Source: Trichoplax adhaerens | Lineage: Eukaryota; Animalia; Placozoa | Reading direction: 5' to 3' | Length of the DNA stretch: 64,000 nucleotides | Assembly: GCF_000150275.1 (NCBI RefSeq) | Contig: NW_002060964.1 | Location: forward strand, 858,975 to 922,974 | In this document: one piece after another, positions 1 through 41,813 of the stretch | Numbering within the stretch: position 1 is the first letter of the stretch | Layout: every line of letters starts with the position of its first letter | Translations under genes and position numbers: made by a program | The notes under the pieces: model-generated | What the model was told of the DNA's origin: nothing | The model's database searches: none | The model's input: only the letters and a program-made list of their open reading frames with translations

Positions 1-2756
1 TACAGGCATTAATCTCGCTATAAAGCTGGTAAGTCTAGTCTCTTCAGTGATATTAATGATAGCTAAGGATTGAATAATCTTAATTATGGCAAAATTATGT
101 TTTAAACGATAAAATACTTACAGTATTACAACCTACTGCCTCTTTGAAGAAATTACTTTAATGAGTATCTTCTATCTATTACATTCTAGGTATTGCCTAT
201 GTTTCAACTATGTGTTTATCTAACTCAGTTGGTGTAGTCGAGAACTCAATGAATTTGGAAGTTGTAGCTGCAATTATGGCGCATGAAATGGGCCATAATT
301 TTGGCATGAATCATGATACGGGCAGAACCTGTTCCTGCCCTTATAAACCAACTGGAGCTACAATATGTATTATGGCAGCGACGTTACGTTCGCCTTACCC
401 GCAATCATTCTCTAGCTGTAGCGTCGCAGACTTGAATAAAAATTTAAATGAAGGACTCGGATCATGTCTGTTTAACGCTCCTACAAAATTATACACAAAT
501 CCAGTTTGTGGAAATGGTTTTAGAGAATCGGGCGAGGAATGTGACTGTGGAAGCGTAACACAGTGTCAGGATCCTTGTTGCAATGCAGCAACATGTAAAC
601 TGCAATCATTTGCTGAATGCGCCTCCGGATCGTGCTGTGCAAATTGTAAATTCAAGGCTAGATCAACGTTATGTCGCAATGTTACGAATGATTGTGATTT
701 ACCAGAATACTGTAGTGGAACATCAGCAGATTGTCCTGTTAATGTCGTCAAGCAATCATCCCTTACATGTGGTAATAGTACCGGTTATTGCTATAATGGA
801 GCATGCGTTACTATCGACGCACAATGTCAAACATTATGGGGTCCTACTGGAAAGAAGGCTCCTCAGCTCTGTTGGGATAGACTCAATGTTGCTGGAAATA
901 AATATGGCTTTTGTAAGAAAACTAGTGCTGGACAGTTTATCGGTTGCACCGCTAGCAATGTTCAATGTGGTAAACTTCATTGCGATACACAAGCCAGTAA
1001 GCCCGCGATCGGTAGTACCTGGAGTTCTGCAACAGCTACATTTACTCAGGTAAGATCGCCTACTTAATGCTACTCGGCAAGTATTACCTCATATACAAAT
1101 ATCGTTAGCTAGGTACTATAACTTGCACCATGATTACATTAGTTTGACCTTAATGTTAACGTTATCTCTGCAAATACTAAATCTCTATTCGGATTTACTA
1201 ATTCTATTATTATAAAGGGTGGAAAGCAAACTATTTGCAGGAGCGCTTCTGTAGACTTAGGCTCGGACATCCCCGATCCAGGGATTGTATTGGACGGAAC
1301 AAAATGTGGAGATAAAAAAATTTGTTTCGATAACGAATGCCGTGATATTTCTAATGTTATTAACGTTAAACAGTGTAACCCTGTTGATTGCTCTAATCAC
1401 GGAGTAAGTAAAAATAATCTAAATTAATCATATTATAATCAGATAATATTCTAAAAATGAAAATAAACAGAGAAAGATAATGATATTAGTTCAGTTCACA
1501 GTAACTTTACTGCATTATTTCTGTTACTAGCTAACTGCTAACGTTGTCAATGTACTGATATCGACCATTTTCTTTACGACCAAAAATGCAGTTAGTTAAG
1601 ATATTGTATGAATTCTTCGTTATAGATTTGCAATAGTAACGGAAACTGTCATTGTGATAATGGTTACGCTCCACCGTCATGTAGTCAACCAGGCAATGGA
1701 GGTAGTATTGATAGTCATGGCCATAGCACTGTACCGACTGCAACTCCAGGTAAGATCGTTCTTAAACAATCTCATGTTTATGTTATACTTACAGCAGTAT
1801 CATATAACTGATAGAGATCGATGGCTATCTTTTCCTTTTCAATACCTTATAGCTTTACTTAGTTTCAGTGATAGTTTTAGTAGTAACAATCAAAATTTCT
1901 TTCCATAATTCTGATAATAGTAACCTTATTAACGTCCCTAATTTATCCATAACGTAGTACCACGATCTGCCAGTTACTTGTTCTTGTCTAGTTTAAGTCT
2001 GATATTGACCTTCAGTAGACAATATTTTTACGACATGTTATAATCTAAATTGATGGGAACTGTATACTAAGATAGAACCTTATAAATTCAAAAATAACAA
2101 TATCACACGTAAAAACGATCAAAATACAATTTCTTGATTCTTCTGCACTAACAGCCACCAGCCAAGCAACTACAAAATTACCCAACACAACTCCAACACA
2201 AACTCCGACTTCAGTCGCTACAACTCCAACTCCGACTTCAGTAGCTACAACTCAAACTCCGACTTTAGGAGCTACAACTCCAGCGCCTGCAACTTCGAAC
2301 TTAGTAACTACCGGTAGGTCTAAATATGTCTCTAGCTATCTCGAGCATAGAACTAGAATGTTAGTCATTTTTAATAGAACTCTTTTATTGTAGTATTTTA
2401 TCTTTAGGCAGTTTTATAGATAAACACCCGTATAGCTTCGACTAGGAGATAATGCCTTTAATTGTATTGCTTGAATTTAATTTTACAGTATTACTTGTAT
2501 AACTTATGTAAATCAAATTTTTACCACCACTAACCGTATCTAATTGCTTTTTCTATATATCTTTTTTCACATTATCATACTAGCATCAACAACTTCAGTC
2601 ACATCTACTATGAATGGAACTACGAACAGTACTAATAGTCCAAATGCTACAGTATCTACAGGAACAGTAGATAATCAAATTTCTGGCGCTTTAGGAAACA
2701 ACTATAACATTCTATATATCTTGTTACTTGTAAAGATTGCTTTTTGGCATTCTTAA
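1..2756 (+). CDS. ADAM-family (M12B) metalloprotease-disintegrin, copy 1 (5' part outside window), predicted GPI-anchored
   Basis: Exons <1-28, 190-1049, 1218-1403, 1626-1749, 2155-2313, 2584-2756, all GT/AG. Contains [12 protein letters not shown], Met-turn CIMAA, disintegrin [15 protein letters not shown]...DCDLPEYC, Cys-rich domain, EGF ending [10 protein letters not shown] stalk and terminal ...[25 protein letters not shown]. One base is missing at about position 20 relative to copy 2. Confidence 0.92.
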
Positions 2757-5700: not shown

Positions 5701-6334
5701 TCTTTTGTGTTCTCTTTCTATCTTTTATTTGACGCTTTGGCGAATAAAAATAATCGCAGACTCAGCCTACAAGTACCGTAATAATTGCCTTAAGCATTAA
5801 TTCCTGCAATGCGTGTTCTTATCGTACTATATTCGGGTAGTGCCCCTCAACACTTTGCATTACTGTTTGATCTTTAATTCTTCTAGGATAATTAAAAGCT
5901 ATAATCAGGTTGTCAAACGATTACTTGCCTTGATTGTATACATTCGTTATACGTGCCATTACTGAGATCGCAAGGGAAAATTGGGTGCAAGTGCATTCAA
6001 CACGCCATAGGTAGGATAAAATTATCTTGTGTAATATATCCTGTGATTTTAAAGTATACAAAAGATCGTAATCAGCTTACTCGTAAACAGATATTCGTGT
6101 GTTTGTTTGAAATTTACTTCTACACAATTTAAGCAATGATACAAGTAGCCGAGTTTTCTGTTGAAAAATAGACTAGAAATACAACGTCCTCCCTAATTTT
6201 TTAATAAAACCCAGATTCCAGAATCAGTTTCTATTTAGAATTGAATTATTCGATATGAATTGTTCATTTAACTGCATATGTATAGACAGACTAAACGATA
6301 AAATGTATCTATGTTTAGCGTACTAGGATTAGCG

Positions 6335-9300
6335 ATGGTCACTCTAGGAAGCAGTAAAACACGGAGCAAGAGCTATTCTCGCTGGCTAACTGTTGCTTTG
6401 TCCTTGATATTGTTAAATACTCTGACCGACGCTAACTTAACCAAGGAACAAAAACAGCAACTACCTCATGGACTTCGTAGTTATCATTTATTTAAACCCG
6501 AAATAACTATTAAAGGAGAAAAATATCAGTGGCCAATTGTATCGTCAACTGCATCAGTCGATATAAATCTAAATGGTGAAAAGCTAACGTTAGATTTACA
6601 GCGTAACGATGGACTAGTCGATCGCTATTTTCATCATACCTATCAAGTTAATGGTCAAATGCGTCGCCAACGAGGCTTAACACAACCATTTTGCTACTAT
6701 CACGGTCGAATTCGCCAAACTGCAAACGCTAAGGTAAGGCTAATGACCTTGACTGTAACTGTATAAGCAGCACGCCACAATTACTAATGTCTATAACTCA
6801 ACTAAATATCCAGTTCATGGATTACCATTAAAGTAACTATTTTACAAGTTACAAACCTACAGAAAGTAACATATTAAACTTTTATGATACTTCACATTCA
6901 TATTACGGTTTATGGATATAGTTACAGTATCCTTAAAAGAAAATAATAAAAGTAAGAATCGAAAATTTCTTTATAAAAGGGAAGATATCTCCATCCATCT
7001 TCCCTTAAATTAAATCGTATAAAAATTAACCAATCACTCTCATATAGTTTCGCCCATAATACAAATAGGTTACCTGTAATACAATAACATAAATGTACCG
7101 TAATTCAATAGCGGATAATACATCGGCTTCACCAGATTGAACAATGTACATAATGCGTTAGATATTGTCTTACATGAATATTAATAAAACTCATTTTTTT
7201 GCAGCTCATGAGTCGTATGATTGAGTTAAAGAAGTCTTTACTTAAAAACTCGCTATTGTAGACGTAGAAATCATTTTGCTATCAACGATTACATTTTTAC
7301 GAGTTAAACCTTAGTCCTAAGCTGTAATTATCATGATAACTAGCTCATAGTATTGCACTATTCGATTAAGATATATTGTGTATTCGTATGATAATTAATC
7401 TTATACACTTAATAGACTAATGGACTAATTTGTTTGCCATCTATCGCCGTTATCGTTAAATTAGGATTCACTAGATAACGTGGCTGTCGCCGCTTGTCGC
7501 GGTATTAAAGGAAGATTTCACTATCGTGGTCATGATTACGCTATAATGCCTCTCGACGATCAACTGCACGCTACCTATCGTATCAAAGATCTAGAAGATC
7601 AAAGTAGTAATCACCTTAAGGAATATCACTGTGCTAGTGAAATCCCAGAATTAAATCCGAAAGTTGAGAAATTGCTTGAAGATAGAAAAGTATTACATCT
7701 ACGTCGTCGGCGCAATGTTATCAATGAAACCAAGTATGTCGAATTAGTATTAGTAAACGATAAGCGATCATTCGATCTCTTAAATGGCAATTTAACCGCT
7801 ATAGAAAGTCATTCTATTCAGGTTAGTGCATAAAATCAATATTTGATATTAATTAATAATTGCCTAACTCCGTACAATCTCATAATTTTCATTACAATTT
7901 TACCTGTTACGCTCACTAAACAACCGCCACACGGTAATGCACTGTGATGTATAGGTATAAGTTAATGAAGTAGTTACTATCGTACACAGAACGTATGTTG
8001 TACAACATTCATGGTAATATTACAATTTTCGCGACTACTGTACTTATTCGAGCATTTATTCAATAGTGGGCCAGCTTCGCAAAAGGGATTGTCCTATCAG
8101 GCGTGATTAACATAACGCCGCATAAATAATGAGCGTTAATCACTAAACAATAGTAAAATTCTATACAATAAATGTACATTATATCGATTGATTATAGCGC
8201 TAACAAGCACTACAATAACTACTAATTAAAATTAATAAAATCACTCTATGTTGCAGTATGTTGATATATTCATTACATATGGTAGGAAAAGTAATTTGAA
8301 TTTTTACACGTTTCGTGTCTTGTAAACTAGTTCGATACCCTGTAAGTGCCAAACTATACAATATTTTAGACATCTTCTGTAAAGTAGCAGCATAATTAGG
8401 TTTTGGTAGGGTATAATTTGAGATTGTCCAACAACAAGGTAGAGCCTATTATGGTTAAGGAATGTAGTCACAGAGCAACTATCAATGGCAATTACTACAA
8501 ATCGCATGTTATCTTTCGCAGTGTTAAGATATTATTTTCATATTCGCAAAGAGTCATGATAAACCAGCTCTTCTATCAAGTGTACCATAAAATATAGAGT
8601 ATCTATCGTAATAGAAACTATGATTATTGTGAACATCTGTTGGTTTCCAGTAGCCTTTAAAAATAGATTGTAAGAATGTGACAGCTCTATTTTGCATAAA
8701 CCTAGGTCGCTAATAACGTCGATTTAAGATATAAGTCAATCAACATACGCGTTGCTCTGATGAGTTTAGTTACGTGGTCCCAAGCTGATCAAATGCTGGT
8801 TACAACAGATGGCTCTGCTACTTTAACTAGGTTCGCTAATTACTCAAATTTGGTTTTGAAGAAATCAAATCCGTATGACAACGCACAATTACTTACAGGC
8901 ATTAATCTCGCTAATAAAGCTGGTAAGTCTAGTCTCTTCAGTGATATTAATGATAGCTAAGGATTAAATAATCTTAATTATGGCAAAATTATGTTTTAAA
9001 CGATAAAATACTTACAGTATTACAACCTACTGCCTCTTTGAAGAAATTACTTTAATGAGTATCTTCTATCTATTACAATCTAGGTATTGCCTATGTTTCA
9101 ACTATGTGTTTATCTAACTCAGTTGGTGTAGTCGAGAACTCAATGAATTTGGAAGTTGTAGCTGCAATTATGGCGCATGAAATGGGCCATAATTTTGGCA
9201 TGAATCATGATACGGGCAGAACCTGTTCCTGCCCTTATAAACCAACTGGAGCTACAATATGTATTATGGCAGCGACGTTACGTTCGCCTTACCCGCAATC

Positions 9301-12300
9301 ATTCTCTAGCTGTAGCGTCGCAGACTTGAATAAAAATTTAAATGAAGGACTCGGATCATGTCTGTTTAACGCTCCTACAAAATTATACACAAATCCAGTT
9401 TGTGGAAATGGTTTTAGAGAATCGGGCGAGGAATGTGACTGCGGAAGCGTAGCACAGTGTCAGGATCCTTGTTGCAATGCAGCAACATGTAAACTGCAAT
9501 CGTTTGCTGAATGCGCCTCCGGATCGTGCTGTGCAAATTGTAAATTCAAGGCTAGATCAACGCTATGCCGCAATGTTACGAATGATTGTGATTTACCAGA
9601 ATACTGTAGTGGAACATCAGCAGATTGTCCTGTTAATGTCGTCAAGCAATCATCGCTTACATGTGGTAATGGTGCCGGTTATTGCTATAATGGAGCATGC
9701 GTTACTATCGACGCACAATGTCAAACATTATGGGGTTCCACTGGAAAGAAGGCTCCTCAGCTCTGTTGGGATAGACTCAATGTTGCTGGAAATAAATATG
9801 GCTTTTGTAAGAAAACTAGTGCTGGACAGTTTATCGGTTGCACCGCAAGCAATGTTCAATGTGGTAAACTTCATTGCGATACACAAGCCAGTAAGCCCGC
9901 GATCGGTAGTACCTGGAGTTCTGCAACAGTTACATTTACTCAGGTAAGATCGCCTACTTAATGCTACTCGGCAAGTATTACCTCATATACAAATATCGTT
10001 AGCTAGGTACTATAACTTGCGCCATGATTACATTAGTTTGACCTTAATGTTAACGTTACCTCTGCAAATACTAAATCTCTATTCGGATTTACTAATTCTA
10101 TTATTATAAAGGGTGGACAGCAAACTATTTGCAAGAGCGCTTCTGTAGACTTAGGCTCGGACATCCCCGATCCAGGGATTGTATTGGACGGAACAAAATG
10201 TGGAGATAAAAAAATTTGTTTCGATAACGAATGCCGAAATATTTCTTCCGTCATCAACGTTAAACAGTGTAACCCTGTTGATTGCTCTAATCACGGAGTA
10301 AGTAAAAAATAATCTAAATTAATCATATTATAATCAGATAATATTCTAAAAATGAAAATGAACAGAGAAAGATAATGATATTACTTCAGTTCACAGTAAC
10401 TCAGCTGCATTATTTCTGATACTAGCTGACAGCTAACGTTGTCAATGTACTGATATCGACCATTTTCTTTACGACCAAAAATGCAGTTAGTTAAGATATT
10501 GTATGAATTCTTCGTTATAGATTTGCAATAGTAACGGAAACTGTCATTGTGATAATGGTTACGCTCCACCGTCATGTAGTCAACCAGGCAATGGAGGCAG
10601 TATTGATAGTCATGGCCATAGCACTGTACCGACTGCAACTCTAGGTAAGATCGTTCTTAAACAATCTCATGTTTATGTTATACTTACAGCAGTATCATAT
10701 AACTGATAGAGATCGATGGCTATCTTTTCCTTTTCAATACCTTATAGCTTTACTTAGTTTCAGTGATAGTTTTAGTAGTAACAATCAAAATTTCTTTCCA
10801 TAATTCTGATAATAGTAACCTTATTAACGTCCCTAATTTATCCATAACGTAGTACCACGATCTGCCAGTTACTTGTTCTTGTCTAGTTTAAGTCTGATAT
10901 TGACCTTCAGTAGACAATATTTTTACGACATATTACAATCTAAATTGATGGCAACTGTATACCAAGATAGAACCTTATAAATTCAAAAAAATAACAATAT
11001 CACACGTAAAAGCGATCAAAATACAATTTCTTGATTCTTCTGCACTAACAGCCACCAGCCAAGCAACTACAAAATTACCCAACACAACTCCAACACAAAC
11101 TCCGACTTCAGTCGCTACAACTCCAACTCCGACTTCAGTAGCTACAACTCAAACTCCGACTTTAGGAGCTACAACTCAAGCTACAACTCAAGCTACAACT
11201 CAAGCTACAACTCAAGCTACGACTCAAGCTACAACTCAAGCTACAACTCAAGCTACAACTCAAGCTACAACTCAAGCTACAACTCAAGCTACAACTCAAG
11301 CTACGACTCAAGCTACAACTCAAGCTACAACTCAAGCTACAACTCAAGCTACGACTCAAGCTACGACTCAAGCTACGACTCAAGCTACGACTCAAGCTAC
11401 GACTCAAGCTACTACTCAAGCTACAACTCAAGCTACAACTCAAGCTACAACTCTAGCTACAACTCTAGCTACAACTCTAGCTACAACTCTAGCTACAACT
11501 CAAGCTACTACTCAAGCTACAACTCAAGCTACGACTCAAGCTACGACTCAAGCTACGACTCAAGCTACGACTCAAGCTACGACTCAAGCTACTACTCAAG
11601 CTACTACTCAAGCTACAACTCAAACTACAACTCAAGCTACTACTCAAGCTACTACTCAAGCTACAACTCAAGCTACAACTCAAGCTACAACTCTAGCTAC
11701 AACTCTAGCTACAAATCAAACTCCGACTTCAGGAGCTACAACTCAAACTACGACATCAGGAGCTTCTACTCAAACTTCGACTTCAGGAGCTACAACTCAA
11801 ACTACGGCCTCAGAGGCTACAACTCAAACTACGACTTTAGGAGCTACAGCTCAAGCTACAACTCAAGCTTCGACTTCAGAAGCTACAACTCAAACTCCAC
11901 TTCAGGAACTACAACTCAAACTACGACCTCAGGAGCTACAACTCAAACTCCGACTTCCGGAGCTACAACCCAAACTTTGACTTCAGGAGCTACAACTCAA
12001 GCTCCAACTTTGGGAACTACAACTCAAACTACGACCTCAGGAGCTACAACTCAAACTCCGACTTCTGGAGCCACAACTCAAACTTCGACTCCAGGAGCTA
12101 CAACTCAAACTCTGACTTCTGGAGCCACAACTCAAACTTCAACTCCAGGAGCTACAACTCCAGCGCCTGCAACTTCGAACTCAGCAACTACGGGTAGGTC
12201 TAAGTAACTGTTTCTAGCTGTCTCCAGAATAGAACTAGAATGTTAGTCATAGTATTCTTTTATTGTAGTATTTTATCTTTAGACAGTTTTATACGAGTAT

Positions 12301-12638
12301 ATAAAACATTCGCGCTGCTTAGAGTAGGAGATTATATCCTTAATTGTATTGCTTGAATTTAATTTTACAGTATTACTTGTATAACTTATGTAAATCAAAT
12401 TTTTTCTACCAGTAACTGTATCTAATTGCTTTTTCTATATATCTTTTTTCACATTATCATACTAGCATCAACAACTTCAGTCACATCTACTATGAATGGA
12501 ACTACGAACAGTACTAATAGTCCAAATGCTACAGTATCTACAGGAACAGTAGATAATCAAATTTCTGGCGCTTTAGGAAACAACTATAACATTCTATATA
12601 TCTTGTTACTTGTAAAGATTGCTTTTTGGCATTCTTAA
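6335..12638 (+). CDS. ADAM-family metalloprotease-disintegrin, copy 2, long mucin stalk (apparent -1 frameshift at about 11899)
   Basis: Exons 6335(or 6311)-6733, 7465-7821, 8706-8922, 9084-9943, 10112-10297, 10521-10644, 11052-12193, 12466-12638. Signal peptide ([17 protein letters not shown]), prodomain FCYYHG, putative Cys switch EYHCASE, furin [28 protein letters not shown]. Confidence 0.93.
11168..11719 (+). repeat. Coding 12-bp minisatellite (GCTACAACTCAA), about 46 units, encoding (ATTQ/ATTL)n
   Basis: 552 bp of 12-bp period. Variation is mostly at the Thr wobble position (aca/acg/act) or caa/cta. Confidence 0.97.
11720..12160 (+). repeat. Coding 27-bp degenerate tandem repeat encoding TPTSGATTQ-like units
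   Basis: Recurring actccgacttcaggagctacaactcaa-type units. The ORF track 11977-12207 shows the translation. Confidence 0.92.
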
Positions 12639-14378: not shown

Positions 14379-14712
14379 TCTGTCACTCTCAAAAGTAATT
14401 AGACACACCTACTGTTATTCCGTACTAATTAAATCTTTATTATATTAACCCAAACATGTTTACATTTTACAGTACGATAGCATTCGTTCTTATGCCTGCC
14501 ATTCTCATAAATAATTAGATACATCCACTGTATCAACTCATGCTAATCAAATTTTTTTTAACCAAAAATATGTTTACATTTTACAGTACGATAGCATTCG
14601 TTTTCCTGCCTGTCATTCTCGTAAGTAATTAGATACATCCACTGTTTCAACTTATGCTAATTAAATTTTTTTAACCGAAATGTGTTTACATTTTACAGTA
14701 CGATAGCATTCA
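14379..14712. repeat. Approximately 115-120 bp element tandemly triplicated upstream of ADAM copy 3
   Basis: Three copies of ...ctctc...taattaga(c/t)aca...actgt...tgtttacattttacagtacgatagcattc. A single homologous copy lies at about 4668-4770, upstream of copy 2. Confidence 0.85.
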
Positions 14713-27500: not shown

Positions 27501-29905
27501 TAATTAACACGGTGGATTTACGCTATAAGGCTATTAACGTTCGCGTTCTACTCGTTGGCATTGTTACCTGGTCACAGCAAGACCAAATTAACGTGACTGA
27601 TAGTGGAACTGCTACCCTAAGTCAATTTTCAGATTATGCTATTAAAACCTTACGATTAACAAATCCCTACGACAGTGCACAATTATTCACTGGTATCTTC
27701 CTTAAAAATGAAGCAGGTAAGAAAAATGACTGTATGACAGGTTACTCCATCGTATACCGTAAGTAGCAAGTCCTGACAAGCCAATATAAGCTTAAATGTT
27801 GATTAATTATCATGACCATTCTCAATATAGGCTTAAATATTGATTATCATTACCATTCTCAGGTATTGCCTATCTGTCTAGCATGTGCTATGGTAATTCC
27901 GTAGGTGTTATTGAGAATACTCTCAATATTCCCGCTGACACTATCGTCTCAGCGCATGAATTGGGCCACAACTTTGGCATGGATCATGACAACAGCCGCC
28001 ACTGCTCGTGCACATTCCAACCAGCCAATGCTACCAGTTGTATCATGGCTGCTATGGTCAGCCAGCCTTATGCGCAAACTTTTTCAAACTGCAGCGTCGC
28101 GGAAATGAAGAGTGGCCTTTCTCAAGGATTAGGATCATGTCTATGGAATATTCCAACTAAATTATTTACTAATCCAATATGCGGTAACGGTATACGAGAA
28201 ACCGGAGAAGAATGCGATTGTGGCTCACCAGCAGAATGTACAAGCAATTGCTGTAATGCCTCAACATGTAAATTGCATGCATCTGCTCAATGTGCAACTG
28301 GTCCTTGCTGTTCTAACTGTACATTTAAACAGAGATCGACACTTTGTCGTGCTGTAAGCAATGATTGCGATCTACCGGAATACTGTAGCGGAAATTCTGC
28401 TGAATGCCCAACTAATATATATAAGCAATCATCAACTAACTGTGGAAATAACACTGGATACTGCTATAAGGGGGCTTGCTTTACAGCCAACGCTCAATGT
28501 CGTCTGTTTTGGGGATCAACTGGAAGAGAAGCGGATAATTTATGCTGGAATATACTCAATACTCGAGGAAAGCCTGAAGGTTACTGCCAAAGAATTGCCA
28601 GTGGTCAGTATATTCCATGTGCCCCAGCTGATATTAAATGCGGAAAGCTGCAATGCGATTCTTCAACTAATTACCCACTTATTGCAATAATTGGCAACAT
28701 AACTATAATATCATTTACGCAGGTACAGTAATTTATAAAGTCATCCATAGTATTCGCCCAATAAATTTACTATGTACGAAAATCAATTCGCCAAACTAAA
28801 TTCCATATATAGCCTAATGTACGCTTCCAACTTTGAAATTAGGGAGCAGTAACATCATATTGTAAAAGCTTCACTGCCGATATAGGCGATAGCACTCAAG
28901 ACCCTGGATCAGTTTTAGATGGCACTAAATGCGGTAATCAAAAAATTTGCTTCAAGCAGCAATGCCGAAGCATCACGGCAGTATTAAACATTACACAATG
29001 TGATCCAGCTGACTGTTCCAATCATGGGGTAAGAATTATTTAACGATTCTAATTCATACTTTTATCAGCATAGCAAGTATTGGCAGGACTACACAAGAAA
29101 TACTTCACCCCGCCATATCCCTCTTTTGTATAGGGGATAAGGATAGTGCTGAAAAATTTCTTGAATGGTCCCTGGTGCCACTCAACATATTATACTGTAT
29201 CATCCGCACTATCATTACTCGGATATCACATCTGCTTCATTTCGCTGCTGCTGTATGTAGATATGCAATAATAAAGGACATTGCCACTGCGATTCTGGAT
29301 ATGCTCCTCCTAACTGCAGTAATCCTGGCAATGGAGGCAGTATAGATAGTCATGGAAATTCTACCGTTGCAACAGCTACAGGTAAAATTTGGAGAAGAAC
29401 CAGCTTGTCCTTGTATCTTGAAGCTATTTTCTTTTAAGTAGTTCTCAGTTATATTTATACACTAATTCACACGTCATTGTTCTAATTATCGTATACCCTA
29501 AAATGTGATATTATTGCCTTATAACATATTTGTATTTTATTTACGCTTCATCGCTCTTTGCCTGCGATTTATTTAAATCGACTAATGAATGAATCTACGT
29601 AATCGGATTTCAAAATATCATTGATTTGGTATGTTGTACTCACGAGCTGAAAGCATGCATTGGTTCCATTGAATTGGATTTAGCTACAGTAGCATCACAG
29701 ATTCAACTATATGTTAAATTTAATCCGCTTGTTTGTAGAATTATTTCTATTTTATTGATAAAAGTTTTTCTTCAAAATTTTCAATCTTATAGATCTCGTC
29801 GTTATATCTCCGTCAGCAACTACACCAAATGGTACAATACGAAATCAAGGCATTCAAAGCATTTATCTAACACTGCTGTGGTTTGCACTATTTCTGTTGA
29901 TTTAA
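24579..29905 (+). CDS. ADAM-family metalloprotease-disintegrin, copy 4 (divergent), predicted GPI-anchored
   Basis: Exons 24579-24953, 26709-27056, 27500-27716, 27863-28722, 28843-29028, 29261-29381, 29793-29905. Signal MKVFRAIALTLWWVMHLATIPSYA, RQRR/NV, HELGHNFGMDHD, CIMAA; ends DLVVISPSATTPNGTIRNQGIQSIYLTLLWFALFLLI*. Confidence 0.92.
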
Positions 29906-30149
29906 TACTTCTAAATCTGAAATTGTATACTACAGCGATAACAACTAGTGCTTTTATCCTCATTCCGATGAATTTGGAATCGGGCTAAAGTAATCACTTA
30001 AATATGTGTAGTACTGTGTAACAGTTTTATCCTAGCTTTGGTATATATTCATATCAAGTATTGTAGAAGTGCTAGATACCCCATGGATGTACTAGAGTTT
30101 CAAATAAAACAGTAAATTTAATAACTTTACTCAGTAACGATCTAGCTAC

Positions 30150-30429
30150 TACACAGTACACGGTATAAAGTTACTGAACCTCTGACAGGTCTACGACAAA
30201 TGGTAATACTATCTGTTAAATGAGCACATTATCGTAAACCGTCAGCAAAGCGACGGGAGTTTGCACTAGTATATTTTCAAACTTGCTAGACCCAAGCATT
30301 ACACAGTACACGGTATAAAGTTACTGAACCTCTGACAGGTCTACTGAGTACGACAAATGGTAATACTATCTGTTAAATGAGCACATTATCGTAAACCCTC
30401 AGCAAAGCGACGGGAGTTTGCACTAGTAT
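30150..30429. repeat. Direct tandem duplication, period 150 bp
   Basis: tacacagtacacggtataaag...gggagtttgcactagtat at 30150-30272 and 30300-30429. The second copy has a 7-bp insertion. Confidence 0.95.
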
Positions 30430-30834
30430 TCATTATTTATACGCATCATTGAATAAGCCATTTTCTCTTGCACCTCAATCACTGCAACAATAAAATTAAA
30501 AGTGTTAATGTTACAAGATGCAATACGGCTATTTCTTTCTTACTTTAGATCGATTGATCAATTACGCTATCATGATTGAGCTATGCTTTTAACGTAGCAT
30601 GAAACGATAAAATTGAACATTAATGAACTCTAATTATGTTAGTGGCGTTGAGAATAAGATTCATATGACCACATTATGAGAAAATTGTGTTCATATTAAT
30701 ACATTTGATTTCTTGATCTTTGTCGAAAAGGCACCATATTAACGTACTTCTGTCGATGCATTTATTACCTTATTACTATCGTAGATGACCTATTTTTTAT
30801 TTATGAGAGTACTCTATATAGACTAATAGCAGCG

Positions 30835-31382
30835 TGTAATGTAACTAGTATTGTGATTGTAGACTGTTAGCCATCTTTAGTATAATGTACGATAGATATT
30901 TATCCTAAGAGATATTTGGTAGCTATAACTATAGACTGTAGTGGTATAGACTCTATGCTAGAGTACAGATGGCTATATACAGTAAATTGTTGAGTTACTA
31001 ATAAGACTATAGGTAAAAATAGAACTGTAAATCATATTTCAGGATATGGTTAATTCATTGTACTTTGGCTGGTGTGAATAATGTCTGCGTAAGTACTGTA
31101 GTCGTATCCATATTGGATTAATGATGGTCCGCAGTAGAATAGTCTTACTAAGAATAATTTAACTATGTGTAATATAAGGTAAAAGGTTGCCATTCGGATT
31201 GTAGCTGCGAATGCTACGAAAAGTATAAAAGCATGCAACTTTAGATTATTTCAGTTAGTTCGTTGTAGAAGTCATTAGTAGTAGTATTCGGCTATAGTAG
31301 AACTGTGTGCAGTTAATCTTTGTATGAGATTCATTAAAGCCCTTATTTTTCTAAAATTTGGAATCTCGTGATTGGTATATAT
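30835..31382. repeat. Dispersed approximately 550-bp repeat, copy A (probable non-autonomous TE fragment)
   Basis: Highly similar to 60044-60589, same orientation. Both carry the same 62-aa - strand ORF. Confidence 0.9.
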
Positions 31383-31479
31383 ACTCAGCGGTATTTCGAT
31401 AACGATAACTTAAATTTTTAAACAATTCTTGATATATAACTAAAGTTTCCAAGCAGTATAAGATATACAACTAGTAACA

Positions 31480-32010
31480 TAATCAATAACTACGGAAAAG
31501 GGATAAATTAATAACCTTGCCCCATAAGAATAATGTCAATATATAATCGTCCAATATAGGATGAAAGGAAAGGTTGTACTACTCATCATAAGCATAAATT
31601 ATAATTATCAACACAACCCGCTGGTCTGGTAATACTTGTTGGTGCTTGAAACTTTTTAAAATATATAGAACCTTTGTTCTGCTAAGTAAAGGCACATTAT
31701 ATCTTTATTATCCAGCAATGTCTTATTCAGTTATAAATATCAGAAATCGTATAATAAAATGAGTTAGAGATCTACAGGAAAATGATGAAAGCCACCTGCT
31801 ACTCATGTACAATATTGGCCAAATTAAATATTTTGAAAGGAAGATAATAATTGTTACGTCAGAATATCCCATCGAGCAAGAAAATAACAGTAAAATAAAT
31901 GAAATCTCTGCAGCACCATTTAGGAAATAATAAATGATGATTGCTCTCCTTATTATTTTAGTAAAAGATTTGATAGATAGATAGTATATCCTTGTTGGTC
32001 TAATCATAGA
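31480..32010 (-). pseudogene. Possible degraded rhodopsin-type GPCR relic
   Basis: Broken frames give TM2-like SDVTIIIFL..., ECL1/TM3-like SRWLSSFSCRSLTHFIIRFLIFIT, then RYNV and TM4-like RVVLIIIIY..SSTTFPFILYW, with stops and frameshifts between them. Pattern recognition only. Confidence 0.3.
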
Positions 32011-33513
32011 AAATAGTCAATTACTCGATGATATCCCAGTGTGCTAAAAATAAATAGCTGTATCTCTATTATCGTCTACATCGAGCACGACTGAAAACAG
32101 TAGACGATGAATATTAAACAATACAGCCATCATCTGTATTTTCATGCTAACCAAAATGCTAAATGAGAGCCCTACCAACGTTCTGCATTTGTTTTAAATG
32201 CTTAACTGGGTTATATTATACTTTCTTTTAACGTATGCATGTAGTGAGCGAAAATGATTAAGAGGATATTACATATGAACCCTTAGGAAGTTACTATGAA
32301 ATGACAGGATACCTCTGTTAGGTTGATCAAGAAAAGAAAACCCAGTAACCCAGCGAGTTGCATCATCTTTCTATTCATTATTCATATTCAACATGATCTA
32401 AAATAGTAAACGCTTATTACTACGATACTAAATTATTGCCTTTAGTGAAATGATGTTCATAAGGGAAAAATTCTCTTTGTTATCCTAGATAATACAGAGC
32501 TTAGTTTGTCTTTCAAGATTATACCCTATCCCTCTATGATCAATTAACACTCACAAAAATCTGTCTTGATGGAACATTATAATTCATCGACTCTGCGAAT
32601 CTATCAATGTACCTAATCTTTAAACTTTAATGACAATCCATACTGATGTAATTAATAGTTAATGCCTTTCACTACGGCAACATTGGGCATTGATTAATAC
32701 TTATGTACACTCACAATTATTTATCTAGGACTTGATAATAAAATAAGGTTGAACAATGCTTCGGTGTTAACTTTTAGATAATATTTGTTATAAGCATCCG
32801 ACATAAACTATTGCCGTATTCAACTCATCCTCCATCAAACGAGTCATTAATGAATATATCGTCCAATTCTTTCATAAGATAAATCATTACTATTATCTCT
32901 GACTACAATAAAGTATCGAATTTACTATACTCCAAACTTCAGTCTAGAGGATAAAAATGGGCAAGACTAATTTTAAAAATTTTTTTCAATAACTTCAATA
33001 ATTTACTTTTGAATGGAACGACCTCATGGTGTTTTTAGTTTATCCTGATTTTCTTCTATACATTGGGTGTCGACGGACTCCAGCAGAGAGAAGAAGATGA
33101 AAAGGTCAATATCCGCCATGAAGAAAGAAAGAGTATCCGTACTGGATCATGTTTCCAATCATCATGTTTTATGATGATCGAGTCAGTCGCTAAATATAGC
33201 CTACCTATATCCCATAATAGGTTTAATTAACTAACAACGAACTCTCGAATCTGATTTCCCACTTGGATATCTGTAGTGCGGTCGTATTTTGAAGCTAATC
33301 ATTTATCAGTTGAATAATTTTTATGGTTCTTATCTGATTCCCCTAACTACTGAACTATTTTACAACTAGCCTCTCATATTCCTCTACATCGCTTTAGTAA
33401 GATATTTGCTTATCATTATTTGTAATTTGTTTTAAATAGTACATTTGAACTAAAGTAACTAATAAATTTTCCTCTATTCCCTGCTATTTGTTCCGCTATC
33501 TTAGATCATAACG

Positions 33514-36500
33514 ATGCAGATTGCGTCAAGAAATGAAATTCTTGTCTATGCGTATTTGATTGTGATCTTATCTAGCGCATTATGTACTTCAGCACAAACT
33601 TCTAGATTAACTAAAAAACAACAACATTATTTGCGATCTCAAGGTATAGTCAATTATTACGTCTTCGAACCGTACCTGGAAGAGAAAAACCAACCCATTA
33701 CATGGCCATTGACATCACCAAAATCGTCAATTACTCTTGATTTCTTTGGTTCTGAACTAACATTTGATCTGAAATTAAACGATGGTTTACTAAGCCGCCA
33801 TTTTCACCACACGTATCAGCAAGGCCAAGATAAGAAGCGTGTAGAAGGTTTATCGCGTCCATTTTGTTACTATCATGGTCAAATTAGACAAGCAGAACAT
33901 GTAAGTAAACCATTCACATTTATGCCATCTTGAATCATAATCTAAAACGTGGCTTACGTTAGCCATAATCACTAGTTCGTACATTGTTTCAGTCTTCAAA
34001 TCGCACGATGAAAATACGAACATTTTGTAGGACCAAATCAGTGGAATGACCAAATAAAATATAGCTACACTTACATACCTATATAAGGAATAATCGATCA
34101 ACACGATATTAAATTGAACATGTTAACAATGAATACATTTCATCCCCATCAGTTTAGCCTCAACTGAAAAAATAACTCATCAGAGCGATAAACAAGAATG
34201 GGATGTAAATAAATTCCTTGCATAACAGCATCCATATTGAATAGTTAAATAACATGTTATCGTAGAAGTAATAAATTCATCACTGTATCCATGCTAGGCA
34301 ATTAGGTACCGTACATACACTTTAGTCATTTTCCAATCGATTCATCATCAAGTTTCTCCAGTATCATGATAAAAATAAATAATCCTATACTTATGCTGAG
34401 TTATGCATCTGTATGATACTCGACATACAGTTGAGTAGCAATCCTAACAAGATCGAGTCTTATCCACATGTATATGAGAATCTACTGTACTGTGTACTGT
34501 ATACGTGCTGTATAGTCAAGAGTATTTAATGACTGGGACTGCAAAAAATATATTCACCACATACATACCATCCATAAATCATAATCGAACAACATAAATC
34601 TGCTTATCAGAGGGACTAAGTCACAGTTAGTAAAAAATCGAATAGTGACCCATTTCTGGAACTAGAAATTGAATTCCAATCACATCCGTGTTGTATGTTG
34701 ATAATCTTATCGCTACTGTAATTGATGGAAGCAATTTTCATTGGATCCATTTCCAACGATAAAGTTAATTAATGAATCTTAAACAAAACTGTTTTTCCAT
34801 ACCCGTACTAGGCAGTGGGGTATTTACTTACAAAATTACCCAGAATAACTACCGTACTATTCATGCATATCTTCATAAATTATAGTTAGACACGATTTTA
34901 TTAGCGATAAGAATTGCAAAGGAACAGGACTTGTTCATATGCATTTCTATACTTTTGACTCAACTAATTTCTCATCACGGCTTGGATAAGCAAAAGCAAG
35001 TTTTATTCATTGCATGTTTCCATACTGTAAGATCGAACGATAATTCATAACTAAGACTATAAATTGTAGTTAAACCTAATCAATGCAATTTTATACACGT
35101 CCAATGTATATAATATGTTTAGTGTAACATATATGATGCATAATCTAATAATTTCTTTCGACCGGAACGAAATAAATCTATATCATATACGCTTATACAA
35201 CCGATAAATAGCGAAATAATATCTTGTTTTTAGAACTGCTAGAGAAAGTTGGAAGTACATGCTGTATATTAACACTTCCAGTATTTAGAGGAAGTCTATG
35301 TTTGTATAGTAATACAAATGAGCCTTTATCGTATACTGCAATAGAAGAAGCATCCTTACAGATATCATTAAATTTGTTTTATATTTCTAAATCTATTTCT
35401 GTTTATTCCTTATTTATAAGACTCAAGATCATGTTGCTATAGCGGCATGTCGGGGATTAGAGGGAACATTCGAATATCGTGGAAAGAACTATGCAATTCT
35501 ACCTGTTGATAACCAAATTCATATCCTTTATCGCCAAGAGGATAGCCATGACAGTTTAAACGATTTTACTCGACAACATCGATGTGATTATGCTGTTGCA
35601 GAGGGGAATGATGATAGGCGTAAGATGATGCAAGAACAAAGGCAAGCCAGTCATCAACGCCGACGTCGTAATGCTCTTAACGAAACCAAATATTTGGAAT
35701 TAGTTTTAGTCAACGATAAGCGATCCTACGATTTATTTAATGGTAATTTGACAACACTGGAAAGTCATACTATTCAAGTAAGTACGATGATTTAATAACC
35801 TAATTATACAGTAAAACTAATTTCTCATACGTCTGGCTTACGCTTTTTGACCCCGATTACATTGCCTCCATGAATTAGAAAATCTGATCAATTTTGAATA
35901 GATTAGAACATTAAGTATGATTAGGTTACATATGAAAAATTTTGAGATTCTCCTCCCTTAATCATTTCTATTATCTTTCGAGCTAAAAAAATCAATTATA
36001 AACCCCTATCACTATGTACTTTAGTAAAATCACGATATTAGATATTTTTGATAAACACTCTTAACTGTAATCAATTATATCATAATTAGTATTCGGCTTT
36101 AAATCAAACCCGCAGCTTCGTACTATTTCATTGTTGATATGATGCGATAAATAATTTAATTACCGAACTTCAAATCATTTTTTATTCGGATTTTAAGGTA
36201 TACGCATAATCTAATAAAATCGAAGGCAATTACCCGAGTAAACAGCCTGAAATAAGACCGATTTATTGACAGAAAAGATGCATTCCTGTAAAACCAGTAT
36301 TGAAACTGATTTCTCATTAGCATAAGCCACAATGTGTTTCAAGTTTTTAAATTCTTGTTACATGCCTCTCAACACCATTATTAGAAATAATACCATAAGA
36401 ATGACTAAATTTACACAGTATAATAAGTCTTTAAAGGTCAAATAGTCATTGACGCCGACTAAAAGCTAATTCGAGCGCTACTATTCTATGATAACGCAAA

Positions 36501-39500
36501 CATCCTCATTTTAACAATTATCATCGCCAAAGGGTAGAAAGACTATTCTATCCCATTTGAATAGCTTTAAGTTAAGGCATATTCAATAGTGATGACTCAG
36601 ATAACATTGAGACGATAGTTATTGAAAAGGCTATCTTAAATGACAGTATCACTTATTATACCGTGAGAATTAATAAGAAACAAAATAATGCAAGGATAGA
36701 CGGTTTGGCGTAAACAATGCAAATTATTGTTATCTAAGTTCTTTCTTCAAGCATTTTAAGATTGATTTTCAGGTTGATTTTCAATTTTCGGTAAAGCACT
36801 CTATGCTCATTATTAAGTCAAGTCCAAAGGAAGTATAATTAGTGAACGTTGTAAATCTTTCATTGATGACAATGTCCGATTAAGCATTTGTCCTCGACTC
36901 AATAGGCTCCCAATTGTACGGAAAAGGATTTATTGATCTAATTAATAGATAATATAGAAGTCTGATGCCTAAATAATGCAATGTTCAAAGACAGTTCTTT
37001 AAATAACATATCAATTTATAATCTTAAATTGAAACGATTATGATTAATCTTTATCTCTTTTATTTTTACTGATTTATTTTACTCGCTAATGTAGCTATTA
37101 TAATTAATGAATAATTCTTCTAAACTTCTGGATAAGTTTAATATTATATAGTTACACTTTATTTATTGAACGTAGATATAGATTTGATCGTCTTATAAGA
37201 CTACTAAGGATGATAGCACTATTAATTTCAACTCAATATTACTCTAGATTGCTAATGGCGTTGATCTACGTTACAAAACCATTCAAATTCGTGTAGCATT
37301 AATTGGTATCGTTACATGGTCTGTGCAAGATCCAATTACAGTCACGGCAGACGCTTCGGCAACACTAACCAAGTTTGCTAATTATTCACGCCTAGTCTTA
37401 AAATCTATTCATGCTTATGATAGTGCTCAACTCTTGACTGGAATCAGTTTAACCGGAAAATCAGGTAAGTTTATTCTCGATACAATATTTGATAGTAGTA
37501 AACAACGGCAAAGAAATTTGATTTAATAGCCTTACCGAACCAGTTGAATACCGTATTCATCTAGTAATAAGTGCCATACTACTCAAACGACCACTGGTTC
37601 AGATCTGCTAAGGAATAGAATTATTTTTTCTAGCTGCACCGAGCTTCCAAGTTGCCAATAATATTAATTATAAGTGATCTCTCTTTCTACAGTCAACATT
37701 AATAGCAAATTCAGCATACACTTATAGTATAGTTTATGATAGAAAGCAACTGCAAATCTTCTTTTTACCCTAGTTCATGCTTTGATGTCTTCTCTGTTTT
37801 GCTGTATCGATCGATAACTTTTCAAACCACTGCCCAACGGAAAGGCAGACATATATTTTATGCAAATGTACGCTTATACGTGCTCGAGTCATGAAAAATT
37901 TCCGGTATCTTAGATCATCTTATTATCAGTTGATATTTTAACATCGGCGATATTTTGTTACTCTATTAAGTATTCAAGTCAATGTCAATTAAATTAAATA
38001 TAAAATAGCAAGGAAAGTACACGTTACAGGCTCTAGATAGCGAATCAATCGCCTATAGCTTTACTAAAATGCAAATTCTATCTTAACTAAAGCGCTTTTT
38101 TTTCATACATTTATATCTATTGCATCTTGCTTACGTAGCCAAACTTCTTAAGAAATTTGTGCCATATCGGATTTCACTATCTATCTCCTCACTCCTTTAA
38201 ATTATGATTTAATACCCAACCTATCTCCCCGCAATGCCTGTCACTTACATCAATATACTAATGAAATAAATGTATTCGGTTTCATGTATAATATAGTATT
38301 GATAGTTACATTAGAACTGATATAGCTAAATCAGCTATGACTAATGTATAGGTAGAAATAAAAATTTGAATTGCCAAAAGTAGCCAAAATGAAACAGTAT
38401 GCTATTTATTCTATCTAGGTCTAGCCTATGTCTCAACTATGTGCCTATCCAATGCAGTGGGTATTTCCCATAACTCCAAAAATGTTGATCAAGTTGCCGC
38501 TATCCTTTCTCATGAAATTGGGCACGTTTTCGGTATGAATCATGATACTGGACGAACTTGCACCTGTGTTTATAAACCTAGTAGTGCCAAGATATGCGTT
38601 ATGTCTAGTGTACTCTCGCAGCCCTATCCGCAATCATTTTCAAGTTGTAGTGTTGCAGATTTAAATAAGAGCCTACAGGAAGGATTAGGCTCCTGCTTAT
38701 TTAATCAACCTACAAAATTAGCAACAGCACCAAAATGTGGTAATGGATTCGTTGAAGTAGGAGAAGAATGCGATTGTGGCTCGGTAGCAGAATGTACTAA
38801 TCAATGTTGTAACGCCACAACGTGTAAACTCCGTGCTTCAGCAAAGTGTGCTTCAGGTCCTTGCTGTCATAATTGCCAGTATAAAGCAAAATCAATACTC
38901 TGTCGTGGAGCGATCAATGACTGTGATCTGCCAGAATATTGTAGTGGTAAGTCAGAATTATGTCCAGCTAATATGGTAAAACAAAATGCGCTACAATGCT
39001 CCAGAAATACTGGTTATTGCTATAATGGGGCATGCTTAACCATTGATGCACAATGTCGAACACTATGGGGACCACATAGTGCAGATGCAGCTAGTATTTG
39101 TTGGAATCGGCTTAATGTTATGGGAAATCAATATGGATATTGTAAGAGATCTAGTAGTGGAGCTTATACTGGTTGTAGTGCAGCCAATGTTCGTTGTGGT
39201 AAACTACATTGCTGGACTAATGCTTCAGCGCCAGTAATAGGTGCTACTTGGAGATTGGCAACAGTTACATTTACTCAGGTAGTGGAGAAGAAGATGTATT
39301 AGAATTAAATTTTATGTAATAAATTTAGCTACCTTGACCATTTCATATTAAAATTGAAAGTGATCAATTAAAACCATAACTAATCTATTTCTACTCTCAA
39401 TTGTAATTTAGGGAAGCGCTCAAATACCATGTAAGAGCATTTCAATCGATTTAGGTAATGATATTCCTGATCCAGGTATTGTCATCGATGGAACCAAATG

Positions 39501-41813
39501 TGGTCAAGAAAAGATTTGCTTTAATAATGAGTGCCAAAATATAAAATCAGTCTTAAATATCAAAGAATGCAACCCAGCTAACTGCTCTAATCATGGAGTA
39601 AGGATTACATTGATAAGATATTGAAAACTCTCATTTCTATCGGATAGTAGAATCTGATAATAAGAAGTCACGTTTAGTATTCTACACTTTCATTCATTGA
39701 AATGCACCATGTTTCTACTATGATGATAGAAATTTTTCATATATTTATTCTCCAAATTAGATTTGTAACAGTAATGGCAATTGCCATTGCAATGCTGGAT
39801 ATGCTCCTCCTGATTGTAGCCAATCAGGTAATGGCGGTAGTATTGACAGTCATGGAAATCAAACAACTGTAAATCCTAGTGTAGGTTAGTAAAATTTCCG
39901 TCCTTTGCTAGTAATCAGATATTTATGTAGAATCCTGTATAATCGTAACCTTCTTGCACAATTGATTTCCTCCAGTGCCTAGCCAAGTCGTTTCCTCATC
40001 GACATCAACAGTCACAACATCACAGCAAGGTAGCTTTAAAATATTTCATATGTATTAGTGAATGATGCGGATTGGTTAATATTCTAAATGAACTACTTCT
40101 TCATTAATACTTCATGTATAAATTTAAGTCTTTGTACCGTAATACCGTACTAAAGTAAGGTAGCTAAATACTATTTTAAAAATTCTTTAATTTTATTTAT
40201 TTGCGGTCTTTCAGTTTCTTCCAGCCAGGTCCTATCTTCATCTATATCTACTACATTATCGTCGCAGCAAAGTAAGAAAGGGAATAAATATAACAAGATT
40301 ACATCCTATAATGTGTAGCATTAAGAATGAATAGAGTAACATTAGTTCATGGAAATGTTGTTGGATATTATCTCACGGAATAAGTTTTCTGTAGTTACTC
40401 TAGAATACGAGTTTACCAGAAGTTTCATAGTTAGCATCAACATGAAAGATTAAATATTTAATCCAACGGCTTTGAGGCTTCTATTCCACTCTTTTTTATT
40501 TATCTGCATTTGCAGCACCATCGTTGCGAGTAGATTTGGATGCCGTAAATCAAATGCCTACATTATGCGTATACTATGCATCATTCTCGCGATAAATCAG
40601 CTATGACCATTGGATACAGCATTAAATATTTATTTTGCTTACGTCAGATATCTCTGTAGTGTGATGCGGCGAGTTATGTGCAAATTTATTCTTAAACTTA
40701 CCATCTTTACTCACAAATTATCTATCAAAAACACAATTTAAATATTGTAAATTATTTCAGCTATTGCTCAACTAATGGTTGATCTTTTTTGTTGAAGCCT
40801 CTAGTCAAACGCCTACCAGTTCTTCCATTTCAGTAACATCATCTCATCAAAGTAAGAAGCCAGGAAATTTAATTGCGTTTCCTATTAGGATTGATATCTA
40901 AATTGCTATTTCTTGTTAAAATGAAAGTCAAATTTATATCATTTTAAGTTATTGCTGAGAGCAATGCAGAAAATTTAAATATAACAGTCTTGAATATTTA
41001 CAACAACCTTTGAAAATCAGTCAGCACTAATTAAAAGATAATTTGAACTGTTTTAGCATCTTCTTCATCGGTTCATCAAACTACTACAACAAGCTCAGTC
41101 ATAAGTACATACACTACAGCTTTGCTTCTTTCACAATAATTAGAGAAAAAATAATATATATATAGTTAATTAACTGGTTTAAAATCACTTCTATTTACTA
41201 CAGCATCAACTCTATCCTCTACAACATCGCAAAGTACAGGTAGGCCACTAAATGTTAATTTCGTTGTCATTCTACTCTAAAATGATTGTCAACTCCTATT
41301 TTAGCCACAACAGGAATTAATCCTACTAAGGCTACGTCTAGTGAGCCAGCAACATTCACTAGCTCTACCTTTGGTAAGTACAAAAATTTAAAGATACATT
41401 ACCTTACTATAAAACTGGTTGAGATGACTATGATCATCACTGTACCGGTTTAGTAAATTTACTTGGCAATTGCATCTATTTCTTATAGATTTATCACTAA
41501 TCTTAACATCAGAAGCTATCACCAATCAATCGGGTAATTTATTTGAGTGAAATTAGAATATATTCCTTATTAAAAATAGTTGCTTAGTATTCTGGTGTTG
41601 GTTGTACTTAATACTCTTTTTATTATCTGCTGCTTTCGCACATCTATAGAACCAAATGGAACTTTGGCCAATTCGGATGCGACACCTACGATACAGCCAA
41701 GTCCAATTGGAACATTATCAACAGAAACCAGCGATGCAATCAAACTACAGCATCAATCAATGTGGATCCCATTAATCCTGACTTTGTTAACTCTATTGAT
41801 ATTTAAGCCATAA
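33514..41813 (+). CDS. ADAM-family metalloprotease-disintegrin, copy 5, micro-exon-encoded S/T stalk, predicted GPI-anchored
   Basis: Exons 33514-33900, 35421-35777, 37248-37464, 38419-39278, 39412-39597, 39761-39884; micro-exons 39976-40029, 40215-40271, 40798-40851, 41057-41104, 41204-41239, 41305-41373, 41489-41533; last exon 41650-41813. [30 protein letters not shown]; ends ...[30 protein letters not shown]. Confidence 0.9.

Follow-up and report, generated by a model that had tools for sequence, protein, structure and literature searches.

Introduction

The textbook ADAM is a type I membrane sheddase, and its transmembrane segment and cytoplasmic tail are regarded as the main routes of its regulation, by way of iRhoms, tetraspanins, kinases and SH3 partners; canonical animal members carry signalling tails, and their snake-venom relatives are secreted. 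Can an ADAM ectodomain be held at the cell surface by a lipid instead? The question is raised by a 64,000-nucleotide stretch of the Trichoplax adhaerens genome (contig NW_002060964.1, positions 858,975 to 922,974 of the forward strand; hereafter the window), in which five tandem ADAM (M12B adamalysin) genes, copies 1 to 5, lie head to tail on the plus strand within positions 1–41,813. An original prediction had proposed that all five close in a signal for attachment of glycosylphosphatidylinositol (GPI). We find that the genes probably do end in such a signal and that GPI anchoring, itself inferred, is the best reading of their C-termini; the evidence comes from the design of the tails, from spliced RNA of copy 4, from two transmembrane-type paralogues in the same genome and from an orthologue in another placozoan.

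Results

A tandem array of ADAM genes with intact zinc motifs

Comparison between the copies defined six conserved coding blocks, E1 to E6. Family and structure searches were run exon by exon, and the joined spliced models were checked for reading frame only. The HExxHxxGxxH motif starts once in each copy, at positions 282, 9176, 19211, 27955 and 38511, and the full zinc motif HExxHxxGxxHD is intact in five of five, as had been predicted, with CIM or CVM after it. Pfam assigned Reprolysin (PF01421) to exon E4 with E values of 1e-19 to 1e-24 and to E3 with 8e-14, and the propeptide family Pep_M12B_propep (PF01562) to E1 of copy 2 (E 1.7e-7); Disintegrin (PF00200, E about 1e-21) and ADAM_CR (PF08516, E about 1e-23) were above cut-off in each copy tested. 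The EGF-like exon E6, which carries the motif GGSIDSH once in each of the five copies, is a weak match to PF07974 (17.8 bits, under the 22.1-bit cut-off) and can be aligned to the EGF region in numerous ADAMs at 60–83% identity. Ahead of the catalytic domain, copies 2–5 have a furin site, RRRR or RQRR, and by inspection each of them begins with a signal peptide consisting of a Met, a hydrophobic core of 12–16 residues and a small-residue cleavage site.

The solved structures closest to the 300-residue exon E4 are snake-venom P-III metalloproteinases (the RVV-X heavy chain, atragin and VAP1; E 4e-65 to 3e-55) together with ADAM22. A HMMER search with E4 against 1.8 billion representative proteins returned 4,648 matches, the best of them ADAM12/19/33-like at 40–52% identity, and a word-indexed protein search gave nothing above 70% identity, ceilings that reflect collections from which the source genome and its close relatives were apparently left out. 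Within the array, E4 is 53–68% identical among copies 2, 4 and 5; at the DNA level, copies 1 and 2 share 98% identity and copy 3 shares about 84% with each of them. Judged from their sequences, these results support the view that the array genes are real ADAMs, catalytically competent in appearance. A Rfam scan of window positions 1–43500 gave no match.

Copy 1 enters the window at E4 (190–1049; C-terminal half of the catalytic domain, disintegrin and ADAM cysteine-rich domain, 98% identical to copy 2), its 5' half being hidden by 7,860 N directly upstream (G000:C1393:851115-858974), and continues with E5 (1218–1403, the end of the cysteine-rich region, with conserved AG/GT boundaries) and the EGF-like exon E6 (1626–1749). 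In copy 2, E1–E3 occupy 6335–8933 as homology blocks with approximate splice sites (6335–6763, 7465–7830 and 8706–8933) that encode the signal peptide, the propeptide with RRRR and the start of the catalytic domain, followed by E4 (9084–9943, from Pfam and structure matches), E5 (10112–10297, conserved boundaries) and E6 (10521–10644). The corresponding exons of copy 3, again with signal peptide, propeptide and RRRR, are E1–E3 at 16201–18977 (blocks within 16201–16701, 17602–18132 and 18747–18977), E4 at 19119–19981 by Pfam, E5 at 20145–20330 with conserved boundaries and E6 at 20981–21104. Copy 4 has E1–E3 at 24579–27727 (blocks within 24579–25076, 26709–27071 and 27500–27727; signal peptide, propeptide and RQRR), E4 at 27863–28722 (HELGHNFGMDHD), E5 at 28843–29028 and E6 at 29261–29381. 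Copy 5 opens with a non-coding 5' exon (33253–33396), and then has E1 (33505–33900; signal peptide from the Met at 33514, and propeptide), E2 and E3 (35421–37469, with E2 and its RRRR from 35421 and E3 at 37248–37469; inner boundaries predicted), E4 (38419–39278, Pfam), E5 (39412–39597, conserved boundaries) and E6 (39761–39884).

The propeptide exon E2 of copy 4 (26709–27071) lacks a Cys at the place at which those of copies 2, 3 and 5 carry their single Cys, in a cysteine-switch-like motif (HCAS, RCAS or RCDY); the latency mechanism of copy 4 may therefore differ.

A phase-1 intron leads from the EGF exon to a short last exon

In five of five copies the EGF exon is closed by a phase-1 GT donor (G/GTAAG, or G/GTTAG in copy 5, where it reads on as G/GTTAGT), and the AG acceptor of the last exon keeps the frame through to the tail and the stop codon. 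The last exon of copy 1 (2584–2756) encodes a linker rich in Asn, Ser and Thr, the small-residue triplet S-G-A, the spacer LGNNYN and a hydrophobic end that runs to the stop; that of copy 2 (12466–12638) encodes the same peptide. In copy 3 (21692–21846) the triplet is S-R-A and the spacer MRSSYN, and the exon differs from that of copy 1 by an in-frame indel of 18 nucleotides. Copy 4 (29817–29905) has N-G-T, the spacer IRNQGIQS and 14 hydrophobic residues before the stop, and copy 5 (41650–41813) has S-D-A, IKLQHQS, 15 hydrophobic residues and KP. The tail strings each abut the stop codon, KIAFWHS in copies 1–3 (n=3) and LLWFALFLLI among the other two. The peptide, tail and spacer strings quoted in the original prediction were all recovered where it had placed them on the plus strand, and its claim that a hydrophobic end runs to the stop codon with no cytoplasmic tail holds for five of five in-frame last exons.

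Between the EGF exon and the last exon lies a stalk of very different lengths. Copy 1 has one serine/threonine-rich symmetric phase 1-1 exon, predicted from sequence at 2155–2313 (159 nucleotides, rich in Thr and Pro). Six such micro-exons are predicted in copy 5, one fewer than had been counted earlier (39976–40029, 40215–40271, 40798–40851, 41204–41239, 41305–41373 and 41513–41533), and copies 3 and 4 have none. The claim that a serine/threonine-rich segment follows the EGF domain thus stands in its long form for copies 1, 2 and 5, but amounts to about 15–30 residues only in copies 3 and 4; likewise, the proposed mucin stalks would fit copies 1 and 5, and copy 2 if its frame is real, but not copies 3 and 4. 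Copy 2 contains a TTQA-type mucin repeat exon (11052–12193; a 12-nucleotide unit in about 71 copies), whose 1142 nucleotides, against 159 in the copy 1 counterpart, are not divisible by three. Its Thr-rich frame changes near 11893 by the loss of a single base, and the original frame meets a stop at 11977, so that reaching the tail requires either skipping of this exon or an error in the assembled repeat. The frame break is either an assembly error within the repeat or a real disruption.

A hidden transmembrane exon further downstream was considered and rejected: in the five intergenic stretches that were scanned, the open frames were AT-rich chance ones, and none combined a transmembrane segment with a basic stretch. 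Glutamate-receptor (iGluR) genes begin about 1.6 kb after copy 5. The case that these last exons truly terminate the coding sequence rests for copy 4 on RNA, as set out below, and for the others on frame, composition and conservation.

RNA joins the tail exon of copy 4 to its EGF exon

RNA contigs from three studies, comprising four runs of which two are recorded as RNA-seq, were mapped on window positions 27940–33939. Three spliced joints of copy 4 are present in all four runs, E4 to E5 (28722/28843), E5 to E6 (29028/29261) and E6 to the last exon (29381/29817). The last exon has a major acceptor at 29817 (four of four runs) and a minor one at 29793 (two of four), 24 nucleotides apart and both in frame, the minor acceptor lengthening the protein by eight residues. 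The contigs pass the stop codon at 29903–29905 and extend about 270 nucleotides to about 30175, giving a 3' untranslated region (29906–30175) that runs into a tandem repeat. Onward splicing to a transmembrane and cytoplasmic exon had been named as the outcome that would overturn the GPI proposal; in the four runs no GT..AG joint leaves the copy 4 last exon, and coverage falls to zero over 31540–33140. The RNA check of the last exons thus covers copy 4 and bears it out.

Both runs recorded as RNA-seq derive from a strain with about 2.5% divergence, in which 12 of 23 listed coding differences are synonymous; two differences fall inside the copy 4 tail, L>L and I>V. Copy 5 is also expressed, its non-coding first exon (33253–33396) being joined to 33505 by a GT..AG joint in four runs, and an RNA contig goes on from 33900 into E2 at 35421.

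A strong RNA signal at 30740–31540, between copies 4 and 5, was examined as a possible exon and rejected, since it corresponds to a 548-nucleotide dispersed repeat. This repeat, at 30835–31382, has more than 650 candidate copies in the genome at about 95% identity, and a 157-nucleotide tandem repeat lies beside it at 30150–30429; the two together account for the very high contig depth over 30140–31540.

The tails have the layout of a GPI-attachment signal

The tails were assessed by a home-made rule that asks for small residues at omega and omega+2, a polar spacer of 5–10 residues, a hydrophobic end of 10–20 residues and nothing beyond. All five tails follow it, with triplet, spacer and hydrophobic end reading S-G-A/6/15 in copies 1 and 2, S-R-A/6/15 in copy 3, N-G-T/8/14 in copy 4 and S-D-A/7/17 in copy 5. 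The putative omega site had been placed 24–27 residues from the end; recomputation gave 24, 24, 24, 25 and 27 for copies 1–5. The hydrophobic end measures 13–17 residues when the single Lys of copies 1–3 is counted in, and the longest uninterrupted apolar run is 8–16 residues, with 0–7 residues beyond it. A loose form of the rule was passed by 35 of 897 stop-to-stop frames of the AT-rich window. When a stretch rich in Ser, Thr, Pro and Asn was required upstream, four of 457 frames passed, and these are exactly the last exons of copies 1, 2, 3 and 5, which speaks against the tails being accidental; the last-exon frame of copy 4 is too short for this strict filter and is supported by RNA instead.

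The genome assembly (105,631,681 bases in 1,414 contigs) contains seven ADAM_CR loci, the five of the array and two others. One of these lies on the same contig about 38 kb downstream of the window, at about 960.9 kb of G000:C1393 (EGF-to-tail exon about 961.6–962.5 kb), and the other is on the minus strand of G000:C1414 at about 1.422 Mb (EGF-to-tail exon about 1.4208–1.4219 Mb). In both, the EGF domain, a long serine/threonine-rich stalk, a transmembrane segment and a basic cytoplasmic tail are encoded within a single uninterrupted exon, where 24–25 apolar residues are followed by KRRR or KYRQK and then by 65 or 39 further residues, and both fail the GPI rule. They share with the array the ectodomain, the GGS(I/L)DS motif that closes the EGF domain, and the serine/threonine-rich stalk; the array genes differ in the intron that follows their EGF exon and in stopping 23–26 residues past the small triplet. 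Of the comparisons made, this one within a single genome weighs most. Taken from their sequences, the array tails appear too short for a membrane span and fit the omega, spacer and hydrophobic-end rule, which supports their reading as GPI signals.

Genes for subunits of the GPI transamidase are present in the genome, with exon-wise matches above cut-off to Gpi16/PIG-T (best E 3e-39) and Gaa1/GPAA1 (2e-22). A Peptidase_C13 match (E 8e-11) could be either PIGK or legumain.

The design is kept in a placozoan orthologue

Exon E4 of copy 4 was used to search exon-level open reading frames on contigs of other placozoans, and a maximum-likelihood tree was built. All placozoan sequences fall in one clade (support 88/88), within which copy 4 has P0159 as its sister and copy 5 has P0162, each at 100/100; copies 1–3 form a recent cluster, and the transmembrane paralogue on C1414 has orthologues of its own. 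This pairing implies that the split between copy 4, copy 5 and copies 1–3 predates these species and that the triplication is young.

Last exons could be compared across placozoans for the copy 4 orthologue only, as the contigs for copy 5 (L019) and copies 1–3 (L015–L018) end earlier. P0159, 70% identical to copy 4 in E4, lies on a 4.6-kb contig with an EGF exon closed by a phase-1 donor, as in copy 4. The single downstream tail frame has a serine/threonine-rich stretch, N-T-G and G-G-A as its small residues, then a short spacer and a hydrophobic end of 15 residues; of two AGs spaced 10 nucleotides apart, the second keeps the frame as acceptor. The two tails have no evident sequence similarity but are alike in design. 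GPI signals typically evolve in this manner, keeping design and not sequence.

GPI-like ends in ADAM models of other phyla

That the design would be special to the array did not hold, as GPI-like ends also occur in ADAM models of glass sponges, Lingula and Owenia. Among the 150 closest representative proteins, ten had such an end by the loose rule. Those that remained convincing after inspection are two glass-sponge ADAMs (Oopsacas minuta KAI6661768.1 and an open reading frame from a Vazella transcript), Lingula XP_013399533.1, Owenia CAH1796798.1 and the contig protein P0106; in one further representative protein the GPI-like end follows a mucin-like stalk. The models of sponge, Lingula and Owenia combine a small-residue site with a hydrophobic C-terminus of 14–20 residues and have, as in the array, a complete ADAM ectodomain. 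The signal stands directly after the EGF domain in the sponge models and after an extra cysteine-rich module in Lingula, Owenia and P0106. None of these GPI-like ADAM models falls inside the placozoan clade of the tree, and the tails therefore probably arose independently.

The extra module of the lophotrochozoan models, those of Lingula (P0107/P0158) and Owenia (P0135) and P0106, ends in CC....CN before the tail, a layout like that of Ly6/uPAR proteins. Only the P0106 module gives a Pfam match to QVR (u-PAR/Ly-6-like), and this is sub-threshold.

In the searchable full-text literature, outside which most subscription journals lie, we found neither an account of a naturally GPI-anchored ADAM, so that the novelty claimed earlier stands within that literature, nor any paper on the GPI-like ADAM ends of sponges, Lingula or Owenia. 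One review uses the phrase GPI-anchored ADAM loosely and without an example; the other matches concerned GPI-anchored substrates, GP63, ZMP-1, RECK and engineered ADAMTS13.

Discussion

A model for the array proteins and its weak points

Our preferred model is that each gene encodes a zymogen of the secretory pathway, with a signal peptide, a propeptide bearing a furin site, an active-looking zinc protease and disintegrin, cysteine-rich and EGF domains. From the EGF exon, the phase-1 intron would lead to the short last exon with its GPI-type signal, by way of serine/threonine-rich cassette exons in copies 1, 2 and 5. In the endoplasmic reticulum, the GPI transamidase would cut at S-G-A, S-R-A, N-G-T or S-D-A and move the ectodomain onto the GPI lipid. 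The active protease would thereby be displayed at the outer leaflet of the plasma membrane, raised on a stalk that is O-glycosylated and differs widely in length. No cytoplasmic signalling would reach it, and a phospholipase or shedding could set it free. The roles suggested for such proteins, in external digestion, defence or tissue remodelling, are pure speculation.

Several observations weigh against GPI anchoring. The rule applied to the tails is a home-made heuristic whose loose form lets through about 4% of random frames. In copies 1–3 the hydrophobic end is broken by a Lys and closes in WHS, which makes for a weaker signal, and in copy 4 the omega+2 residue would be Thr, which is suboptimal. 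Copy 2 as assembled would stop before the tail, unless its repeat exon is skipped or misassembled. RNA support for a last exon covers copy 4, and the ends of copies 1–3 and 5 are read from the genomic sequence. Lastly, one contig of lower depth retains the last intron of copy 4 (29352–29817) and would encode a soluble form with 18 codons beyond the EGF exon; it may be nothing more than precursor RNA awaiting splicing.

Alternative readings of the gene ends

The retained intron and the interrupted stalk of copy 2 would both suit proteins that are mainly soluble and secreted, their tails being skipped by splicing, lost through a retained intron or a broken frame, or cleaved off without transfer to a lipid, and the closest solved relatives, the P-III metalloproteinases, are themselves secreted. 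However, the spliced, tail-encoding form of copy 4 has the greater depth in each of the four runs, a hydrophobic C-terminus would be senseless on a purely secreted protein, and the tail design has been kept across paralogues that split before the compared placozoan lineages; we consider a mainly soluble fate unlikely. Alternatively, the protein might be of type I, with practically no cytoplasmic tail, and held by a hydrophobic end that is kept and spans the membrane as a very short anchor. The hydrophobic character and C-terminal position of that end would allow this, as would the two or three polar residues, possibly cytosolic, in which copies 1–3 (WHS) and copy 5 (KP) close. Yet the apolar runs of 8–16 residues fall well below the 24–25 of the transmembrane paralogues, the tails carry no positive-inside cluster, and a small triplet and polar spacer are correctly placed in three unrelated tails and in another species, which makes an anchor of this kind distinctly unlikely in our judgement.

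For copies 1–3 and 5 it might also be supposed that the true 3' ends lie elsewhere and that the proposed tails are fortuitous open frames, which the reading of these ends from genomic sequence and the permissiveness of the loose rule would allow. This we regard as very improbable, because the strict filter passed ADAM exons alone, all the last exons are in frame through phase-1 acceptors, and the last exons of copies 1 and 3 differ by an indel that preserves the frame. Moreover, no alternative transmembrane exon lies downstream, where the iGluR genes soon follow copy 5, and RNA proves the same architecture for copy 4. GPI anchoring accordingly remains the reading that we prefer.

Comparison with known metalloproteases

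The array shares with the classical membrane ADAMs (the ADAM9/12/15/19/33/22 group) the order of propeptide, reprolysin, disintegrin, ADAM_CR and EGF domains as well as the HExxHxxGxxHD motif and the furin site, and its nearest relatives by sequence are 40–47% identical over exon E4. It differs from them in having no transmembrane helix or cytoplasmic tail, a separate last exon with a GPI-type signal and a stalk assembled from symmetric cassette exons. Accepted soluble ADAM forms also lack the helix and the tail, so that their lack in the array bears on architecture and not on family membership. The snake-venom P-III enzymes have the metalloprotease, disintegrin and cysteine-rich core in common with the array, but they are secreted and have no EGF domain, stalk or anchor, and nothing in the array points to a venom role.

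GPI-anchored metzincins are known from other families. They include MT4-MMP (MMP17), MT6-MMP (MMP25), ZMP-1 of C. elegans and GP63 of Leishmania, and some members of these families swap a transmembrane segment for a GPI anchor. Their tethering at the surface without a cytoplasmic tail is what we propose for the array, but they belong to M10 and M8, not M12B, and disintegrin and cysteine-rich domains are missing from them; they serve as an analogy and are not relatives. What appears new here is an ADAM ectodomain on a GPI-type end, which by this analogy would be the counterpart of the GPI-anchored MT-MMPs.

Implications for ADAM biology

Were the tails not GPI signals, an ordinary lineage-specific expansion of ADAMs would remain. 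A wider proposal is that GPI anchoring is a real and recurrent ADAM alternative to the transmembrane tail, being the majority mode in placozoans (five of seven ADAM_CR-type genes), where it would be older than the lineage split, with separate origins in glass sponges and in brachiopods and annelids, in the latter two coupled to a Ly6/uPAR-like module; in our estimation the case for this wider proposal is evenly balanced. The transmembrane paralogues and the GPI-like models of sponge, brachiopod and annelid make the idea testable by comparison. If true, the mode would have been overlooked because vertebrates and flies lack such ADAMs, and it would parallel the split of the MT-MMPs into transmembrane and GPI-anchored forms.

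Catalytically intact, lipid-tethered ADAMs would show the ectodomain at work without transmembrane or cytoplasmic input. They would be tail-less, raft-targeted and phospholipase-releasable sheddases or surface proteases, with a stalk length set by cassette exons and repeat expansion. Trichoplax, an animal that digests its food on its outer surface, would then offer a simple system for the function of lipid-anchored, mucin-stalked ADAMs.

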